In this document: positions 14,312-53,483 of the stretch, one piece after another
Position numbering within the stretch: the stretch's first letter is position 1
Layout of the letters: every line of letters starts with the position of its first letter
From: Perkinsela sp. CCAP 1560/9
Lineage: Eukaryota > Protista > Euglenozoa: Kinetoplastea
DNA: 64,000 nt
Reading direction: 5' to 3'
Assembly (NCBI GenBank): GCA_965644495.1
Contig: CBFFSA010000019.1
Coordinates: forward strand, 1 to 64,000
The notes under the pieces: generated by a model
What the model saw: only the letters and a program-made list of their open reading frames with translations
Database searches by the model: none
Told to the model about the DNA's origin: nothing
Position numbers and translations under genes: made by a program

Positions 14312-15568
14312 CAGGTTTACCTCGGAATGAAGAAACGCTAGGATTGGTCGCTCTGAAACGAGCCAAGCAATTAGCTCTTAGTCATCAGTATCTGTGCCTC
14401 GAAGCATTTCTTGTCTCCTATACCAGGGCTCGATACTAGCCGAGCGGCGCTTATGTTTTTCTTGCCTATCATCACATCACAGTAAGGTACAATCATTTAC
14501 TCTTCTGCCATAACATCATACATTGTGTATGGCATTACACATCATTACCTACATGGTATCATACATTTGGTATAGCATACATACATTGGTAGCGCATCAT
14601 ACAGTAGTACAAACAGTAGTATACTGTACATACTGTAGCGTATCTGTAGTATACTGTATAGTAGTCAACATGTGCCAACGAGGCTATCCAATGCTGGTCG
14701 TGTATCGCATGGTGATGGACACGATCCCGTGAGGATACCCCTACGACCATTGATGCTCTCCGTCTAAGTGCTGGTCGTAATCTGTAAACTACATGTGATC
14801 CATAATTCTTGTCTCTTATTCCAGAGCTCGATCCTGCGCCTTGTCGTGGCGCTCTGGCTTAACACCCGCAAGAGTTAACCAAGACATGTAGAAACACATT
14901 TGAACATTTGAAACACATTTGAAAAATGTGTAATGGGGTAATAAGGGAAATAAAATTGAAATAAATCGCAACAAAATCTGCGCCGCTTCGCGGCTCCTGT
15001 TTTCTCCTACTGACAAATAAGTAGGCGGTGTAAAATTACTACCTTCTCTGAGAACTGACAAATAAGTAGTGCTTTGTCTTAGTAGGCAGAGCAGTACCTT
15101 GAACTAGCACTTGTACTTTAACACCATGCAACGTGTCGTACGCGCGGTTGATGTCCCCTCTCGACCCAGTAAGGTACGAAACGCGGTCCTCCCACAAGAA
15201 TACAATATGTTTCGACTACTGAGTAACGCCAGTTTCGCTGAGGAGTCATGGACCGAGAAAACGCCTGCTTGTGTGTGGAAGCATGTGGAGTGTAACGATG
15301 AGGGAGAAGTGACAAAGACACAATGGACCAGATACGAAAGGGTATACGTGTATATACAGGAAGAGAAGAGAGTCTCTCTAAAAGGTGCACTGCGATTGAT
15401 TTTCCTACCCGACACATTGACCTCCTTCGATGCTTCCTTGCAAGAGGTTTTGGAGGGGCACGTAGACTTGGCGGTTCTACCGGCAGGATTGAAAACGTTT
15501 GACATTCGTTCGAATCAGTTCAGCGGAGGTTTGGATTTAACCCATTTGCCGTCTACTCTGGAAGATTT

Positions 15569-16364
15569 TCTTTAACGATAAAGATACAGTTTCTGTACCT
15601 TGTTGGTACATTTTGCTAGCCCTTCCTTTCTTTTCCCGGAAACGGGCATATTCTTACTTTTAAATGCCCGTTTCCGGCTGACGGCTAGCTGGAACTGTTC
15701 CTCTTTGTCGCGGAAGTAGGGGACGCACTTCGCACTCTTCACCCCTCCCCGGCTCGCTCTCTTCGAGTGAGCTTTCTTCCCTCCCCGGCTCTCTCCTTCT
15801 CGTGCTTTCTTCTCCCGGGAGCTATGGCCTCCCTTGAGGACCACTGGGCGTGCTACAGCGGGAGGACACGTTGTATGCGTGTATAGGGGATGCGAACTTG
15901 CACCCCTCTCTCCCTACATGCTGTAGCGAGTGCGGCGGTAACGGACCTCCCCATGATGCATCATGATCCACGATAGACCATCTGACAGCATGAACCCACG
16001 GCTTGACCGTGTTGCAGCATGAACCATGGCTATACGTGCTGTAGCATGACCGATGGTCACGGTGGCCTCCCTTGAGGACCACTAGGCGTGTCCTCCGCCG
16101 ACGAGACTCCCGGCTCTCCGCACCTGGGGGTCGCCCAGCTCTCTACACCCGGATTGCCCCCGAAACTGTAATATGGGGATTACGCATCCGGCTCTCTGCA
16201 CCTGCACATGACAACCGAGCTCTCTGCACCTGAGACCCCAGCTCTCTGCACCCGCACACCTCCGGCGAGGGCGAACCCTCACTTGATCCACCCGTCGCAT
16301 GCGGGCACGGACTTTGTGAGCATAATCTCTGCACTATAAGTGCATGAACGAACAATGTGCATTG
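15569..16364 (+). mobile_element. SL-headed structured non-coding element, unit 1
   Basis: Begins TAACGATAAAGATACAGTTTCTGTACCTTGTTG|GTAC (euglenozoan SL-like exon plus donor GT). Contains multiple hairpins and GCTCTCTGCACC repeats, and ends in a GCACTATAAGTGC hairpin. Confidence 0.75.
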
Positions 16365-16944
16365 AAAAGATGCAGTTTCTGTACCTTGTTGGTACTTTTT
16401 CCTTAGTTAATCCTTTCTTTCCCCGGCAACGGGCATACTCTTACTGTATTTTTATGCCCGTTGCCGGCCGGCACTAAGGTCGGAACTGTCTCTCTTGTCG
16501 CTGAAGCAGGGGACGCGCTTTCACCCCTTCACCCCTCCCCGACTCACTCCCCTGGAGTGAGTGTGCTTCCCCCTCTCGGCTTTTTTTCGACTTGTCTTTT
16601 TCCTCTCCGAGAGGGCCATGCGTCACGGTGGCCTCCCTTGAGGACCACTAGGCGTGTCCGCCGCCGACGAGACTCGGTTCTCCGCACCTGGGGGTCGCCC
16701 AGCTCTCTGCACCTCGGCTCTGTCGCAGCTCTCTGCACCCGGATTGCCCCCGAAACTGTAATATGGGGATTACGCATCCGGCTCTCTGCACTGCACATGA
16801 TAACCGAGCTCTCTGCACCTGGGACGCCAGCTCTCCGCACCCGCACACCTCCGGCGAGGACGAAACCTCACATGATCCACCCGTCGTATGCGGGATAAGG
16901 ACATGGTGAGTAAATCTCTGCACTATAAGTGCATGATAAAACAC
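16365..16944 (+). mobile_element. SL-headed structured non-coding element, unit 2
   Basis: Starts AAAAGATGCAGTTTCTGTACCTTGTTG|GTAC. A diverged tandem homolog of unit 1 with compensatory stem changes. Confidence 0.75.
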
Positions 16945-17678
16945 ACCTTGGTCACAATAGTCTGTGCGGAAAACCTGATCTCACCAAGCTCCCGGAAGAG
17001 CTAACATGGGCCATGCTCCTTCACAACCTTTTCGTCATACCTGACTTTATTCCGGAAGGTGTTCGCATCAAGCCATATGTGAGAAAATAGCATCCACCCT
17101 GTAGATATAACCCATGCAGTCTGAAGAACCGACGTAAAAACATTTTTATATAAAATGCGGTACTTGGAGTAGGTAGACTGAAGTATTAAAGGAGTACTTC
17201 AGTAGTAAAACTACCACTCTATTTTAGAATACGACTTAATAAAATTTTCTACTGCGAAATATTACGGAGTATAACACTAGAATCTACAGTGGTGATCAGC
17301 ATCTTTTACCCCCCCCCGTACACGTCTTTTATTTTGTCCGATTTCGACCCAATCGTTCCGAATCCGAGTTTCTTTTCACTCGAGCGACCCCCTACCCCCC
17401 TTAGCCAGGTACGAGTCAAAAACGCTAATTACTGTAGCCCCCCGTTTGTAATGGCCTCGATTTTGCCCAAATGAACCTATAAGGGGGTGAGGGGGGGAGC
17501 GATGGAAGATTAAAAGTTGGCACAGAAAGTGTCCTACATTTTGGAGCGAGAATCCAGGAATTATTCAACCGCTAAGTGGTCCTTGGAGGTCTGCCAAAGT
17601 AAAATGTACAGCACCACCCCGCGCCATACCTCGCAGAACCATGTGAAAATATCAAAATATTCAATACGGTGCAAGAAA

Positions 17679-18420
17679 ACCCCAGGCATAAAGGGGCGGG
17701 GGAGATACGAAGCATCAGGTGTAGCAGATTCCTACTGAAAAGAAATCGTGTCTCTCTGCACAATAAAATACGCTTGCTTGGAGTCAAAGGCGTACAGAGA
17801 GATAGGATTTCTTTTCAGTAGGAATCTGCTACACCTATTGCTTCGTATCTCCCTCGCCCCTTTATGCCTGGGTTCTATAAACCCACGAAAAAGTGGTCAG
17901 CTGGCCACCACCTGAAAAAGTGGTCGGCAGGCCACCCGCTGAAAAAGTGGTCAGATCCTCACTCCTCTAGGGGGTGGTCAGCAGGCCACGTTTTTAGGAG
18001 TTGAAGATTCATCTTACACATACGAAATGCAAACCGTCTTTTCGGTGGTCAGCTGACCATTTTTTCGTCAGGCGGCCAGCTGGCCAACTTTTCCACAAGG
18101 TGGCCAGCTGGCCAACTTCTTCAGAAGGTGGCCAGCTGGCCATTTTTTCACGGGTTTGTCAGTTGGCCATAAAAAATAGTGCTTCTTTTTCGTTCATTCG
18201 TTATGGCCCCGGCCGCTGAAGCACGTTTTGAAGAAACGAATAGGCCTCGAACATATTTTAGGAGCTGAAAAGAGTTCCCCAAACTTTGAAACAGTTGTAC
18301 TTTATGAAATTGGGGATGATAATGAATCATCTTTGCGATTTTTTGTTCCACGCTCGCACGCTTGCCGCGTTCCAAGTCACGATTTTAGTAAACAGGTTCT
18401 AAAAACTGCGTACTCAACTT
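17679..18420. mobile_element. Foldback hairpin (~75-bp arms, 17679-17875) plus GTGGCCAGCTGGCC-repeat element
   Basis: CCCAGGCATAAAGGGGCG...CGCCCCTTTATGCCTGGG. Homologous to 22280-22805 and 56471-56692. Confidence 0.7.
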
Positions 18421-19286: not shown

Positions 19287-20003
19287 ATGCAACGTGCCGT
19301 GCGCGCGGTTGATGTCCCCTCTCGACCCAGTAAGGTACGAAACGCGGTTCTCCCACAAGAATACAATATGTTTCGACTACTGAGTAACGCCAGTTTCGCT
19401 GAGGAGTCATGGACCGAGAAAACGCCCGCTTGTGTGTGGAAGCATGTGGAGTGTAACGATGAGGGAGAGGTGACAAAGATACAATGGCGCAAATACTTAA
19501 GCGCATATACAAAGGAAGAGGAGAGAGTCTCTCTAAAAGGTTCACTGCGATGGAATTTCCTACCCGACACATTGATCTCCGTCGATGTTTCCTTGCAGGA
19601 GGTTTTGGAGGGGCATGTAGACTTGGCGGTACTACCAGCAGGACTGAAAAAGTTTGACATTCGTACGAATCAGTTCAGCGGAGGTTTGGACTTAACGCAT
19701 TTGCCGTCTACTCTGGAAGATTTGAGTTTGGGATCCAATCGTTTTGAAGGTGAAATTGACCTTACACGCCTCCCCGATACTTTGAAAAGGCTCGACCTTG
19801 GTCATAATAGTCTTCGCGGAAAACCTGATCTCACCAAGCTCCCGGAAGCGCTAACATGGGCCATGCTCCTTCACAACCTTTTCGTCATACCTGACTTTAT
19901 TCCGGAAGGTGTTCACATCGAGCCATATGTGAGAAAGAAACATCCACCCTGTGGATATAACCCGTACAGTCTGAAGAACCGACATAAAAACATTTTTAAA
20001 TAA
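19287..20003 (+). CDS. LRR protein (subfamily 1), intact, 238 aa
   Basis: SKVRNAVLPQE leader, W...C.W..V.C N-cap, and 24-aa LxxLxLxxNxFxGxLDLxxLP repeats. Confidence 0.92.
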   Translation: MQRAVRAVDVPSRPSKVRNAVLPQEYNMFRLLSNASFAEESWTEKTPACVWKHVECNDEGEVTKIQWRKYLSAYTKEEERVSLKGSLRWNFLPDTLISVDVSLQEVLEGHVDLAVLPAGLKKFDIRTNQFSGGLDLTHLPSTLEDLSLGSNRFEGEIDLTRLPDTLKRLDLGHNSLRGKPDLTKLPEALTWAMLLHNLFVIPDFIPEGVHIEPYVRKKHPPCGYNPYSLKNRHKNIFK

Positions 20004-31473: not shown

Positions 31474-31500
31474 AAAAGATACAGTTTCTGTACCTTGTTG
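31474..31500 (+). other. SL-like exon copy upstream of zinc-finger ORF
   Basis: AAAAGATACAGTTTCTGTACCTTGTTG, with a core identical to 15580-15605. Confidence 0.8.
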
Positions 31501-31542: not shown

Positions 31543-33072
31543 ATGGCAAGCTCAGACGTTCCTGCACCAGCATCACGGGGGGAACGACATGTGAGGATCA
31601 GGAGCACCACAAGTATGACATTGACAGCGTTCACGAGCATTAAGTCTGCGGCTGCCAGCTCTCTCGTCAAACAGTTTTACCCAAATCCCGAGACCGGTCG
31701 CGCCGCCCTCACTAACGCGCTCGATAAAAACAATCCAGCCTGCGGACTCATGGTCGAATCGACCGAACTGTTTAGGTATAGAGTTCGACATCGAGGAGCC
31801 GATGAAGGATGGACCTATTATCCGAGCGTTGCTGACCTACATGCCAGGAAATTTTCTTCTACTTATTCCCGCGTCGACTCCCTCAGTCGTGCCCTCGTCA
31901 GATATTTTGAAGGATCTCCTCCCAAACTCCTGCCCTTTGAAATCGAATCATTGCACACAGACAGTCAAGAAGCAACATCGACACCAATCGCCACCGAATG
32001 CAAACACAGCTGTATAAACAAGGAAACATGTTCCCACGCATGCTGTAAGCGACATCTTACGGGCCATGCGAACATCACTCCCAACGAAGAGCCCCGGACT
32101 GCGACAAGTAGCAATGCGGACACGAATATCGCTCCCAACGAAGAGCCCCGGGGTGCAACAAGTAGCAACGCCGACACTAGCGAGTGCAAACACCCCTGTC
32201 GCGACAAACGTACCTGTAAGCACTTATGCTGTAAACGTCACTTGCCTTCCCGCACTGCTGTAGAATCTCCAACTGCTGAGCCACAGCATGAAGGCGGAAC
32301 CTCGCAGCATAGCGAAACACAGGTGTCTTCTCGGGAAGTTGAAGAATGTAAGCATATCTGCACCGACAAACGCGCATGCAAACACCTATGCTGCAAACGT
32401 CACCTATCGCTTACCCTTGTCCATCCCGACGATAGCTCTGGAATAGACGCCACCGACTCACATCGCGAATCGCGCGATTTACCCCCACCACGTCCAGCAC
32501 AGGTCCCTCCTAGCTCCAACAAACCGAGAACCCGTTCAGTCCCTACACGCACAACTTATTACTCTGCTGGAAATGACAACACCTCTCCGGAAACAAGAAC
32601 CGTCTACCACACACTGCACTCGATTGGTAGTACTGTCGGAACCTACATCATAAGCACCGCGCGTCAAGTTCTCGCTACAAGTACCACTCCGGGACACAAA
32701 CCGCATCTCAGTAGAATAACTGAGCAAAACCTTTGTGGTAATGCCCAGATAGAAAACACAGAAGAACTTTCACAAGTAACATGCAAGCTGAAACGGACAC
32801 GACGGAAACGATCCGGCCCACGGAATGTAAGCATGTCTGCGGGAACAAGCGTACGTGCCTTCACCAGTGTTGCAAAAGACACCTGGATAGCGCCCCAACA
32901 CAGCAACAGCGTGACACCGCGGCAACCCAGTACACGGGCGACGAACTCCCAGCACCGCTTCCCCCACCACCGCATGAACCTAGTGAAGTACACTTACCTT
33001 CCCCCACTACCCCGCAGTACGTCGAAATTTAGTGCTCTGAGAGCAAAAATACGCTCGCGCGACCCCCGCTAA
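31543..33072 (+). CDS. Protein with repeated CKHxCxxKxxCxHxCCKRH zinc-finger-like motifs (frameshifted/truncated)
   Basis: Three in-frame motifs (31999, 32185, 32347) and a fourth in another frame (32826). Cut off at ~33025 by a family A-B fragment. Confidence 0.7.
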   Translation: MASSDVPAPASRGERHVRIRSTTSMTLTAFTSIKSAAASSLVKQFYPNPETGRAALTNALDKNNPACGLMVESTELFRYRVRHRGADEGWTYYPSVADLHARKFSSTYSRVDSLSRALVRYFEGSPPKLLPFEIESLHTDSQEATSTPIATECKHSCINKETCSHACCKRHLTGHANITPNEEPRTATSSNADTNIAPNEEPRGATSSNADTSECKHPCRDKRTCKHLCCKRHLPSRTAVESPTAEPQHEGGTSQHSETQVSSREVEECKHICTDKRACKHLCCKRHLSLTLVHPDDSSGIDATDSHRESRDLPPPRPAQVPPSSNKPRTRSVPTRTTYYSAGNDNTSPETRTVYHTLHSIGSTVGTYIISTARQVLATSTTPGHKPHLSRITEQNLCGNAQIENTEELSQVTCKLKRTRRKRSGPRNVSMSAGTSVRAFTSVAKDTWIAPQHSNSVTPRQPSTRATNSQHRFPHHRMNLVKYTYLPPLPRSTSKFSALRAKIRSRDPR

Positions 33073-49377: not shown

Positions 49378-50268
49378 ATGATTCTCATAACACAAACGTG
49401 TGATGATCAGTCACCACACATGAAACGTAGGAAACAGCACCGAGACGTCTCAAGTAGCGCGGAAGTCTGTAATCCATCTAGCCGCCCTGGCAAAATACGT
49501 GGAGCTCTTTTACCGCAAGAATATGAACTGCAAAGGCTTATTTCCGATGTAATGTCTCCAGACCCATCCTGGAAGACATCCACAGCTGCATGCGATTGGG
49601 CAGGAGTGACGTGCAACGAACAAGGAGAAGTGACGGAAATTGATTGGAGTTACAGCTCGGTACTTCGTGCATACGGCGGCTCAATTGCTCGCCGATTATA
49701 TTTAGAACATATTCCCAGAACCGTTTTACGAGTATACTTACCAAGCAACGGCTTTTCTGGGTTCGATTGCTTAAGTAATTTGCCTCCGAATCTAACGCAT
49801 CTTGATCTTTGTTTCAACACTTTTACAGGCACAATAAAGTTTTCTAATTTTCCAGCAACGTTGCAAGTAATTGATTTGGGGTACAATAAATTTGAAGGTG
49901 GCGTAGATTTGGGTAGCCTCCCAGCGCATTTGAATAAATTGAATTTGAGTGGAAATCAATTTTCGGGCACGATTAACATATTTGATTTACCAAAGTGCTT
50001 GGTAAGTTTAAGTTTAAACGCGAATGAATTTACGGGCTACACACGTATTCATCCGCGGACGACACATTCAAGTCACGATCCGCCCTACCAAGACCTGGAC
50101 TTTTCTGCTCTCCCAGCCTCCATGGAATATTTTGAAGTTGCGTGCAACCGCCTTACGGGTAAGCTTCACCTCGAAGGTTTACCATCTTCGATTAAGAAAG
50201 CGGACTTTTCAAACAATCAATTCTTCTACATTGAACCATTCTACATTGTACAATCAATTCTACATTGA
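49378..50268 (+). CDS. LRR protein, 5' part (probably interrupted)
   Basis: PGKIRGALLPQE leader, CDWAGVTC cap and LRRs. Ends in duplicated TTCTACATTGAACC sequence at an insertion. Confidence 0.85.
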   Translation: MILITQTCDDQSPHMKRRKQHRDVSSSAEVCNPSSRPGKIRGALLPQEYELQRLISDVMSPDPSWKTSTAACDWAGVTCNEQGEVTEIDWSYSSVLRAYGGSIARRLYLEHIPRTVLRVYLPSNGFSGFDCLSNLPPNLTHLDLCFNTFTGTIKFSNFPATLQVIDLGYNKFEGGVDLGSLPAHLNKLNLSGNQFSGTINIFDLPKCLVSLSLNANEFTGYTRIHPRTTHSSHDPPYQDLDFSALPASMEYFEVACNRLTGKLHLEGLPSSIKKADFSNNQFFYIEPFYIVQSILH

Positions 50269-50415
50269 ACCATGGCTATACGTGCTGTAGCATGACCGAT
50301 GGGCGACTCGTCTCCTACCTGGCACTCCACTCTCTGTGTGACACCCGTCGTATGCGGGTCATGCGCTGATGGTATGGGCCGTCACACAGAGAGACGTATC
50401 TCTGCGCCACGAGCG
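50266..50415 (+). mobile_element. Fragment related to the SL-headed element, inserted in an LRR gene
   Basis: 50266-50302 is identical to 16020-16056 (37 nt). CACCCGTCGTATGCGGG is shared with unit 2 (~16879). Confidence 0.75.
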
Positions 50416-50419
50416 TATG

Positions 50420-50976
50420 ATCATAACCTGGACGAGAACAAGCTATCTGGGTCACTGGATCTCAGTGAACTGCCGGAGGACTTGATTTTTATGGACATCA
50501 GCAGTAATGAGTTTGAGGGTCTTATAAATTTAGAGACACTTCCACCTTCACTTGAGATTTTACGAATCAAATATAACCAATTTACGGGTAATCTTGACCT
50601 CAACGACTTGCCTGAGTCGTGCACCGATTTTGTCGCTAGCCATAATAGATTTTCAGATGCCCTTGATTTACGACATTTGCCGGAAAATCTTGTAAGTCTG
50701 AAACTTGATCACAATTGTTTTAGTGGTGTTCCCGATCTTACAGCTCTCCCTGAAGATCTTGACGAGCTACACTTAAACCATAACTCTTTAGAAGGGAACA
50801 TTCAACTTGATTTGTTACCCGACGGGCTAACGGATTTGTCTTTAAACGATAACCCAAGGCTCTGCGGATCTGTGAGTCAGAGCGCACAGCAGGGTAGAGA
50901 TATTACTTTCTGTAGGACTCGTATCATGGCTGTTGGGGTAGCGGAAATAGAAGGCCATGAACCATCGGAAGAATGA
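50420..50976 (+). pseudogene. LRR protein, 3' part lacking leader
   Basis: NLDENKLSGSLDLSELP... acidic LRRs. The N-terminus of ORF 50299 derives from the insert. Confidence 0.8.
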
Positions 50977-52376: not shown

Positions 52377-53483
52377 ATTGCGGTGGTTGTATAACTACCG
52401 CTTCACCCTCGATTATTGTAAAAAAAGTGAACAAAAACAGTGAAAATATAAAGAGAAACACAGTAATATAATAGAAGAAAAAAATATATAAGGGGGCTCC
52501 GGTGGTCCAAAACTGAAAAAAAAAATTCAAAACATGGGGGGTCCAGGGGGGGCATACGTCGCGAAATTTTTTTCGAATTTTTTGCTTTTCAAAATCGAAC
52601 GCAGGGAAGTGGTAGAGTAGGCCGCTGCGATAATTCCCCCCCCCCTGGGGGCTTTGTTTTTTCATGCAGGGCGAGACCTGCAGAGATATTTAGGCCCAGC
52701 AGGGGTAGGCGCAATCAACGCTCCCTGCTGAACCTTTTTGCCTTCCGCGGCGACACAGGGAAAAGCGCAGTATATCTTCCCCGGGAAGGCGAAGAGAGAC
52801 GGCCTCATCGGGATAAGATGTCCCGAGATGTTCAGTGAGCGCAATACTCCAGGAAAGATATACGGATTTGTGGGACGCGGATGGCATTCCCATCTTACAT
52901 GCTACAAATGACTTCCATGGTTCATGATACAGCATGGTCAGGGCCATGGATGCATGCTGGCAAATGGAGTCATGATTCATGATGCATCATGGGCATCGGG
53001 GTCCCAGAGAATCCGCCACGGCTGGTGAGCAAGAGAGGTGCATAGAACATCCTCTAGAAAACGCATACAACGTGTTTGTTCGCCGTGTGGGAGACTTCCA
53101 GCTTTTGGAAGCCTCCTGCGTTATGTACCGGTGTCGCGCGATGAAGAAGGCACGCCGCGTGGTCTCGTAGAAGGGTCCTGCAGCGCATGGGGACTCGGAA
53201 CCGTGTTCCGAGCGGGGTGGTGGGAGATGAAGGAAGGCAGGCGCACCCCTACTTTGCGACAAGAGGGAAAATTCCTCTCCTAGCGCCATCCGGAAACGGT
53301 CATTGACATAGTAAAAATATGCCTGTTTCCGGGAGAGAAAACCCAACAAAATAGATTATTCATGACCTTTTGGAAATTTTCTTTTTTAGGCTCTTCGTTG
53401 AACACGGTGGTACTTTTCAACGCGAAGCGAGCAGCATGAGTGACTTCTAAGTTGAAAACAACCACCGCGTTTAACGAAGAGCC
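52377..53483 (+). mobile_element. Family A-B element with ~700-bp different cargo
   Basis: Both ends are present. Followed at 53497 by another left-end palindrome. Confidence 0.65.

Follow-up and report, generated by a model that had tools for sequence, protein, structure and literature searches.

A dispersed, non-coding, probable SINE-like retroposon family headed by spliced-leader sequence in Perkinsela sp. and its proposed mobilisation by RLE-type LINEs

The stretch of DNA analysed here (the window) comprises 64,000 nucleotides of Perkinsela sp. CCAP 1560/9 (assembly GCA_965644495.1, contig CBFFSA010000019.1, positions 1 to 64,000 of the forward strand). Within it, positions 15569-16944 hold two head-to-tail units, U1 and U2, which interrupt a leucine-rich repeat (LRR) gene and each open with the spliced leader (SL) core CAGTTTCTGTACCTTGTTG followed by GTAC. 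We consider it likely, with a probability of roughly 75%, that U1 and U2 represent a stack of two insertions, both from a non-autonomous retroposon family without long terminal repeats that resembles short interspersed nuclear elements (SINEs), for which we propose mobilisation by long interspersed nuclear elements (LINEs) carrying a restriction-like endonuclease (RLE).

This reading is carried in part by the dispersal of related copies through the genome. The SL plus GT pattern CAGTTTCTGTACNNNNTTGGT has 106 matches in the 21-Mb assembly and none with the reversed control, and 95 genome regions, together holding 98 of the 106 sites, were retrieved. Three classes of sites (A, B and C) were set by the sequence 3' of the SL; class C consists of 81 head-bearing copies of the family, both window units included, which are spread over more than 30 contigs. 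A conserved tail hairpin motif is present at at least 85 sites, of which about 60, 5'-truncated copies included, have no listed SL plus GT site within 1.3 kb upstream. The elements measure 490-620 nt, fall into at least eight subfamilies on clustering, and are built from a shared head of ~285 nt, one of three unrelated bodies and a structured 3' tail of ~100 nt. The head consists of SL nt 11-38, GTAC and a series of conserved helices, is 75-90% identical between subfamilies and terminates in an almost invariant box (GGTGGCCTCCCTTGAGGACCACT). Within subfamilies identity amounts to 97-100%; as the family is young, with many copies 99-100% identical, it is likely to be still mobile. Open reading frames (ORFs) crossing the elements are short only and none is common to subfamilies, while the word depth of the element in DNA contigs from public runs is ~30-90 times that of single-copy flanks. 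These observations support a recently active, non-coding SINE-like retroposon that is distinct both from SL RNA genes and from the CRE, SLACS and CZAR elements.

The two units of the window illustrate this build, although not in the same way. The SL core word CAGTTTCTGTAC is found at 15587 and 16373 (five matches in the window at up to one mismatch, versus 0.25 expected), both units finish with TCTCTGCACTATAAGTGCATGA and a short A-rich end, and the ORF list contains no reverse transcriptase (RT) or RLE ORF in either of them, both domains being found only in neighbouring LINEs. The initial annotation of this DNA, made from the letters alone, had described a tandem pair of diverged, non-coding units, each headed by an SL-like exon plus GTAC and closed by a hairpin with a short A-rich tail. 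The heads, the ends and the tandem order were confirmed; the picture of U1 as a simple diverged sister of U2 had to be given up, since only its last ~300 nt are U2-like. Positions 1-470 of U1 represent the head and body of the subfamily sub2 (97% identical to ~18 dispersed copies), and near 16056/16057 the unit passes into a sub7/U2b-like element, of which it has the last ~300 nt, whereas sub2 copies normally continue differently; no other genomic copy spans this junction. The 3' part of U1 contains a second copy of the hairpin box that closes the head (the J box, 16066-16090), GCTCTCTGCACC repeats, the tail hairpins T1 (16290-16305) and T2 with the end (16326-16355), and 10 nt directly upstream of its first J box are missing in comparison with its subfamily. 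Among the 81 copies, an SL that is nearly complete and reaches nt 3 is found in U1 alone. Its exon/intron-type boundary, G followed by GTAC, lies at 15605/15606, and the exon end was placed at 15605 because, in the one probable RNA run, there are contigs that link 15573/4-15605 with different mRNAs. U2 is a typical member of sub3, a subfamily with eight full copies (U2 included) that are 96-98% identical, and its tail has at least 40 matches, many of them at 99-100%.

A second line of evidence comes from the predicted RNA structure. The minimum free energy (MFE) folds of U1, U2 and a member of a third subfamily, calculated independently, have a Y-shaped 5' domain in common (z from -6.8 to -8.3), with the exception of helix P4, which is not in the MFE fold of the third subfamily, where its pairing needs a bulged U. 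Helix P1 joins AAAGA to UCUUU; P2 pairs, in U1, the SL stretch ACAGTTTC with GGAACTGT and, across the family, ACAGUUUC with GRAACUGU; P3 (UGUACC/GGUACA, in DNA TGTACC/GGTACA) runs across the donor-like site. P4 reads GCTAGCC/GGCTAGC in U1 versus CCTTAGT/ACTAAGG in U2, and P5 is a 14-bp hairpin at 15636-15677 in U1 and a corresponding one at 16423-16467 in U2, with arms (15636-15649/15664-15677 and 16423-16437/16453-16467) that are 100% complementary. The predicted head fold is nested and without a pseudoknot. The hairpins for which the initial annotation had claimed covariation, among them P4, CTCGCTC/GAGTGAG and CCCCGG..CCGGGAG, are present in the independent folds of each unit, and their differences between U1 and U2 mark subfamilies and preserve pairing. 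Among 68 distinct sequences, 92% of the cells of head domain 1 are paired, compared with 33-43% when the partner is slid by one to three columns, and changes on both sides occur at ten pairs, a number reached by one of 500 shuffles. Compensatory A-U/C-G changes are present in P5 (33:34), several more in P4 (by subfamily) and also in P8; in the tail they affect T1 (U-A/C-G, 11:10) and T2 (G-C/A-U, 15:7), and the long tail stem, too, has compensatory changes, several of its pairs differing from one subfamily to another. When run on the raw MAFFT alignment, RNAalifold detected part of the structure only, because the P4 arms of different subfamilies are not aligned in register; a covariance-model realignment was no remedy, and P4 was assessed from per-subfamily sequences. 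These pair counts support a selected structure in the family without proving it, and together with the dispersed copies they bear out the earlier idea of an SL-headed non-coding retroposon under selection for structure, with the qualification that the SL part is mostly nt 11-38 only.

The genuine SL RNA gene of this genome provides the reference against which the head has to be read. It constitutes class A and is represented by two 297-nt tandem units on the minus strand of contig 1 (L037, G000:C1:660100-661860), with a full exon of 38 nt (AACTTTAACGATAAAGATACAGTTTCTGTACCTTGTTG) and the intron GTATGAGAAGCTTCGAAC...GGGGCTTA, starting GTATGAGAAGC; this SL and its intron start are of the kinetoplastid/diplonemid type. 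In the spacer at this locus, the opposite strand carries a stretch that looks like a tRNA gene (GGGAATCGAACC...), and the tail of a sub1-like element adjoins the gene pair in opposite orientation. Class A also comprises four SL RNA retro-copies (L051, L113, L116 and L126), which run from about SL nt 3-5 through the whole intron to GGGGCTTA and end in an A-rich tail; the copying of SL RNA seems to be the work of the same machinery as that of the element family. In class B the SL is joined to unrelated 5' sequences, some with ORFs, and begins at nt 3 in 10 of 13 cases; these sites are taken for retro-copies of trans-spliced RNAs, LINE 5' ends included. In DNA contigs of the public runs the words of the SL exon are ~1000-1500 times deeper than single-copy flanks, which, set against the depth of the element, implies a large SL array distinct from units of the U1/U2 type.

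Other SL remnants were encountered beside these classes. In the window, an SL relic at 31474-31500 (AAAGATACAGTTTCTGTACCTTGTTG) begins with AAAG, at about SL nt 13, ends in TTGTTG and is joined directly to a 5' untranslated region (UTR); it is followed at 31543-33072 by an ORF of 509 aa with repeated CKHxCxxKxxCxHxCCKRH motifs and no Pfam match, which resembles an SL-tagged retro-copy of another kind and belongs to a different class, as it is joined to the SL without GT. At L081 and L124, nested partial SL repeats stand at the 5' ends (e.g. ...CCTTGTTGGTTTCTGTACCTTGTTGATTTT) and suggest that the SL was added repeatedly or that the template was switched from one SL-bearing RNA to another.

Compared with the genuine gene, 80 of the 81 family copies are without SL nt 1-10, and the sequence after GGTA is a different one. 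The commonest 5' boundary lies 9 nt before the CAG of the SL core (25 copies), and 12 further copies carry one extra matching base, which is about the chance rate. In genuine SL RNA, which forms three stem-loops, the beginning of the intron pairs with exon nt 21-32; in the elements this exon strand pairs with GGUACA and, ~85 nt later, with GRAACUGU, which reproduces the stem I topology with an inserted branch. The head contains an SL-derived segment and an SL RNA-like stem I in extended, branched form (P2 and P3). A covariance model of the head gives 29 bits to the genuine SL gene and 13-27 bits to unrelated SL-capped loci; since the genuine gene barely outscores the latter, homology between the head and the SL RNA intron past GGTA is unsupported. 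A more far-reaching and rather doubtful proposal takes the head for a direct descendant, or a functional mimic, of SL RNA that would link this system to the CRE/SLACS lineage with its SL gene targets, given that the elements begin at the very SL position where SLACS/CZAR cut the SL gene and preserve stem I of SL RNA. In that case an ancestral SL-gene-specific system of RLE LINE and SINE could have been re-targeted to LRR genes, the head still acting as a protein-binding or target-pairing signal that completes integration. The codons of the LRR motif N-x-F-x-G (e.g. AAC CAG TTT TCN GG) resemble the SL core CAGTTTCTG.

An intact paralog of the LRR gene that is interrupted made it possible to define the place of the insertion. 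Identity of the flank to this paralog stops at 15568, and paralog alignment together with read joints bounds the insert at 15569/15570-16944, between 15568 and 16945. Both junctions fall at the equivalent position of consecutive LRR repeats, the 3' part of the interrupted gene picks up one 72-nt LRR unit later than the paralog, and one LRR unit is missing relative to the paralog. No target-site duplication was seen at the LRR sites where the reading frame is traceable across the insert (the window and L047), and a missing duplication is usual for R2-type integration. A joint of 15568 to 16945 in a contig of two public runs was considered as an empty allele and rejected, as the contig has 71 letters between these positions and 13 differences and is the paralog. 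Downstream of the interrupted gene, the stretch 17681-17872 and 17879-18170 contains a long inverted repeat with 81-nt arms that are 93% complementary, as well as an array of GGCCAGCTGGCC-containing units.

The same kind of site recurs in the family. An N-x-[FLIM]-x-G motif was found in 28 of 80 independent 3' flanks (35%), within an offset only 5 nt wide, compared with 2% of control 48-mers; in about one third of the copies the insertion lies ~9-10 nt upstream of the Asn codon, LxxNxFxG being part of the LRR repeat, and element orientation equals gene orientation in every LRR flank read. LRR specificity is a preference and not a rule. The 3' ends are exact per subfamily and are followed by unrelated flanks, without poly(A), and 5'-truncated copies begin at many positions (query positions 127-258 in one search). 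Head-to-tail stacks are also present at L033, L069, L089 and L125, with a downstream member that is variably 5'-truncated, and at L034 two copies stand exactly one LRR unit apart. The possibility that the SL head of a resident copy serves as landing pad was rejected as the main cause of the stacks, given that the downstream members are variably 5'-truncated, sometimes deep into the body; this variable truncation fits re-use of the downstream half of the target site.

Candidates for the mobilising enzyme were sought among the LINEs of the same genome. In one LINE group the C-terminal region contains CCHC and PD..E.K motifs (read by eye), with weak zf-RVT and PD-(D/E)xK-type hints in Pfam, and occurs in more than 130 copies; a PDB sequence search with this LINE C-terminus gave no match. 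Element heads are located 90-250 nt downstream of five ORF ends of the RLE-LINE type, in the same orientation. In the tail of the short elements a small hairpin is enclosed in a long stem, after which come ATCTCT, the terminal hairpin and, behind ATGA, a short A-rich end, and the 3' UTRs of three LINEs (L028, L044 and L046) have this layout in the form (A)TCTCT, with stem sequences that differ; a fourth (L006) has only the small hairpin and the ATGA-type end in common with it. The LINE at L028 adjoins an LRR flank, NLFTGELD, that is, the equivalent LRR position. Because of this tail layout and this flank, mobilisation in trans by RLE LINEs is proposed.

Two arrangements that had been considered as parts of autonomous elements were set aside: L002, with an RT ORF, an element and an RNase H ORF, turned out to be an element nested within a single copy of a different type of LINE, and the ORF after the head at L083 belongs to a family of ~113 genes without a Pfam domain and was taken as flank. 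The LINE at L002/L031 (G000:C7:~501100-504300) lies outside the RLE group and carries the nested sub2 copy between its RT and RNase H domains. A sub0 copy at L046 (G000:C1:3069473-3070893) sits inside a (GT)n run after the 3' end of an RLE LINE, and at L111 the same type of LINE is followed by (AT)n. In the 21 Mb more than 1000 first-look RT candidates were counted, with numerous intact ORFs of 1000-2800 aa, and the content of apparently active retroelements is unusually high.

In the mechanism that we propose, the RT of a LINE would recognise the tail of the element and copy its RNA by target-primed reverse transcription at a nick. The target would be read mainly from its downstream half, and a new copy could therefore settle at the junction of a resident copy with its downstream flank, which would generate head-to-tail stacks. 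The head is probably a required cis-acting RNA module, because it is conserved across subfamilies with unrelated bodies; by analogy with the 5' RNA element of R2 and with Pr77 of ingi/L1Tc, our best guess is a signal within the ribonucleoprotein that binds protein at the 5' side or defines the 5' end. U1 itself may have originated through template switching in one insertion, from a sub7-like RNA to a sub2 RNA and then to an SL-bearing RNA, as suggested by its chimeric structure and its uniquely complete SL.

Several points weigh against this reading. About 65% of the insertions lie outside recognisable LRR sites, in microsatellites or other sequence. The link to LINEs is drawn from a common architecture and a common target in four LINE 3' ends, none of which is near-identical to the tail of any SINE subfamily, and no LINE with the family head was encountered. 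Searches in Rfam returned nothing relevant, neither a ribozyme nor an SL RNA family, with the window at gathering thresholds and, at E up to 1, with the locus. Contigs of the probable RNA run cover the SL part of the element only and not its body, which does not count as evidence of silence. Finally, independent covariation events are few, as the family is young, and related sequences can exceed shuffles without any structure.

Among the other explanations, one retains trans-mobilisation and departs from the explanation preferred here only in the origin of the head. The short elements might be internal-deletion derivatives of an autonomous element with the same head and tail, comparable to RIME/ingi and NARTc/L1Tc, so that the SL would be a relic of trans-splicing of the parent mRNA and not a mimic of SL RNA. 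Such a descent would agree with the full-length LINE and mRNA retro-copies of class B, most of which start at SL nt 3, with the three unrelated bodies between common head and tail, which fit repeated deletion or recombination, and with the tail layout found in LINE 3' UTRs. However, none of the 81 head-bearing copies runs on into a LINE ORF, the head begins at SL nt 11 and not at nt 3, and the GGTAC after the SL forms an SL RNA-like stem I, which is unexpected for a random 5' UTR; we regard this origin as unlikely.

Far less probable is the view that the units are processed retro-copies of an ordinary trans-spliced cellular RNA, i.e. retrogenes or pseudogenes of long non-coding RNA with an SL relic, as in dinoflagellates. 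SL-tagged copies of other RNAs do exist in this genome, such as the one at 31474-31500 and the four SL RNA copies of class A, but the absence of poly(A), the eight subfamilies with exchanged bodies, the conserved head and tail with compensatory changes, the fixed target position, the large numbers of copies at 99-100% identity and an SL truncated at nt 11 that retains a donor-like GT all speak against it. That the units are ordinary or degenerate repeats of the SL RNA gene array, or dispersed SL RNA genes with their spacers, is already refuted by the genuine SL gene and by the SL lengths in the family, even though the units are tandem and begin with SL plus GT and the depth of SL words implies a large array: the genuine 297-nt unit has a full exon and a different intron, while the family lacks the first ten SL nucleotides in all but one copy, continues differently after GGTA and is dispersed, also inside coding genes. 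The initial annotation had named the location of the true SL gene and the collection of genome-wide copies as checks of its claim, and both came out in its favour. Its alternative of a parasitic or circular RNA found no support, the probable RNA run showing SL-capped mRNAs and no element body. The positions of the units, their parts and the further family copies of the window are collected in Table 1.

Table 1. Positions in the window of U1, U2 and their parts, of the interrupted LRR gene and its paralog, and of further family copies.
Feature	Position	Strand	Basis
LRR gene, 5' part	15111..15568	+	ORF list (ORF 15111-15575); alignment to paralog 19287-20003
U1, chimeric element copy	15570..16355	+	Comparison with dispersed copies; paralog alignment
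SL-derived segment of U1 (SL nt 3-38)	15570..15605	+	End of flank identity; SL-part lengths; RNA-run contigs
Head domain 1 of U1, helices P1-P5	15578..15708	+	MFE -54.5 kcal/mol, z = -8.3; pair counts
Conserved J hairpin box GGCCTCCCTTGAGGACCACTGGGCG of U1, closing the shared head	15824..15850	+	~90% or more column identity in most copies
U2b-type 3' part of U1	16057..16355	+	89-91% identical to ~6 copies
Filler between U1 and U2, ~10 nt	16356..16365	+	
U2, complete copy of subfamily sub3	16366..16943	+	573-nt sub3 consensus
Head domain 1 of U2, helices P1-P5	16364..16497	+	MFE -52.2 kcal/mol, z = -6.8; covariance-model score 142 bits
U2 tail: T1 (ACCCGTCGTATGCGGG), ATCTCTGC, T2 (GCAC TATAA GTGC), ATGATAAAAC	16879..16943	+	
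LRR gene, 3' part	16945..17090	+	ORF list (ORF 16929-17090); paralog alignment; contig joint
Intact LRR paralog of the interrupted gene	19287-20003		ORF list
5'-truncated sub2 copy (last ~160 nt) at the equivalent LRR-repeat position	50268..50428	+	
Diverged S5-type family copy with degraded SL part, ending ATATCTCTGCAGG..CCTGCATGAAAAAACAAAG	52655..53370	-	58 bits

If the proposed reading is true, no non-autonomous partner of RLE (R2/CRE-type) LINEs would have been described from a euglenozoan before this family, and its head would represent a SINE head derived from the spliced leader and not from tRNA, 7SL or 5S RNA. Members of a large LRR gene family are disrupted at one codon-level position, which makes the element a probable driver of the turnover of that gene family. 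The system would also offer a natural case in which to study the RNA signals that an RLE LINE recognises at the two ends of its template. Our literature searches found neither an SL-headed SINE nor a paper on the SL sequence.

Among the known systems, SINEs with a structured 3' end in common with a "stringent" partner LINE, e.g. UnaSINE1/UnaL2 of the eel, come close in general build. Like these, the present family is short, non-coding and multi-copy, has a head-body-tail organisation with 5'-truncated copies, and shows a 3' stem-loop architecture in common with LINE 3' UTRs and no dependence on poly(A). Unlike these, its head is not derived from tRNA, 7SL or 5S RNA and has no known RNA polymerase III promoter, its likely partner is an RLE (R2/CRE-like) LINE, its preferred site lies in a protein-coding repeat and no target-site duplication was seen. 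R2 is an RLE LINE that is site-specific in 28S rDNA and has no poly(A), variable 5' junctions and a 5' end made by a hepatitis delta virus (HDV)-like ribozyme; its 3' UTR and 5' RNA elements direct two protein subunits, and both RNA ends are needed for integration. Two-end RNA signalling of this kind would explain a conserved head and tail around a freely varying body, and by analogy a protein would bind the head or the tail.

In trypanosomatids, the known non-autonomous retroposons are members of the ingi clade with Pr77, and descriptions of the CRE clade cover only coding elements that occupy SL genes (PMC12278014, PMC3383444, PMC8190864). Pr77 is a 77-nt promoter and HDV-like ribozyme that binds SL RNA gene promoter factors (PMC3383444, PMC8190864), in which there is a thematic parallel to the present family. 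The present family resembles RIME, NARTc and SIDER in being non-autonomous, in its kinetoplastid-type genome and in combining a conserved 5' hallmark with a variable interior, but those elements belong to a LINE clade of the apurinic/apyrimidinic endonuclease (APE) type and have poly(A) and target-site duplications. Its hallmark also differs from Pr77, set apart here by description, in its length of ~285 nt, its derivation from the SL and the lack of a match to ribozyme families (E up to 1). With the SL-relic retrogenes of dinoflagellates (PMC12014239) it has in common a DNA-encoded 5' SL remnant that marks passage through RNA. Those retrogenes, however, are mRNA retro-copies with the SL joined at a splice acceptor (PMC12014239), whereas here the SL is followed by a donor-type GT, has a fixed truncation and heads a dedicated mobile family.

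Linked to the SL are also SLACS, CZAR and CRE1/2, which are protein-coding, lie inside SL RNA genes and have poly(A) ends, and for which a mobilome survey of trypanosomatids describes no non-autonomous partner of the CRE clade (PMC5814959, PMC12278014). The present family has in common with them a euglenozoan host, a connection to the SL and, as its likely enzyme, a LINE with RT and RLE. As the initial annotation had held, it is nevertheless distinct: it is non-coding and without poly(A), carries its piece of SL internally, and has its insertions in LRR genes, microsatellites and other sites. The insertion site of CZAR and SLACS in SL genes is nt 11/12 (PMC5814959); by our own count it is as far from the SL core as the 5' boundary of the family, which precedes CAGTTTCTGTAC by 9 nt. 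If the proposed reading holds, this match between the 5' boundary of the elements and the SLACS/CZAR cut site would give a handle on how SL-specific retrotransposons change their target.

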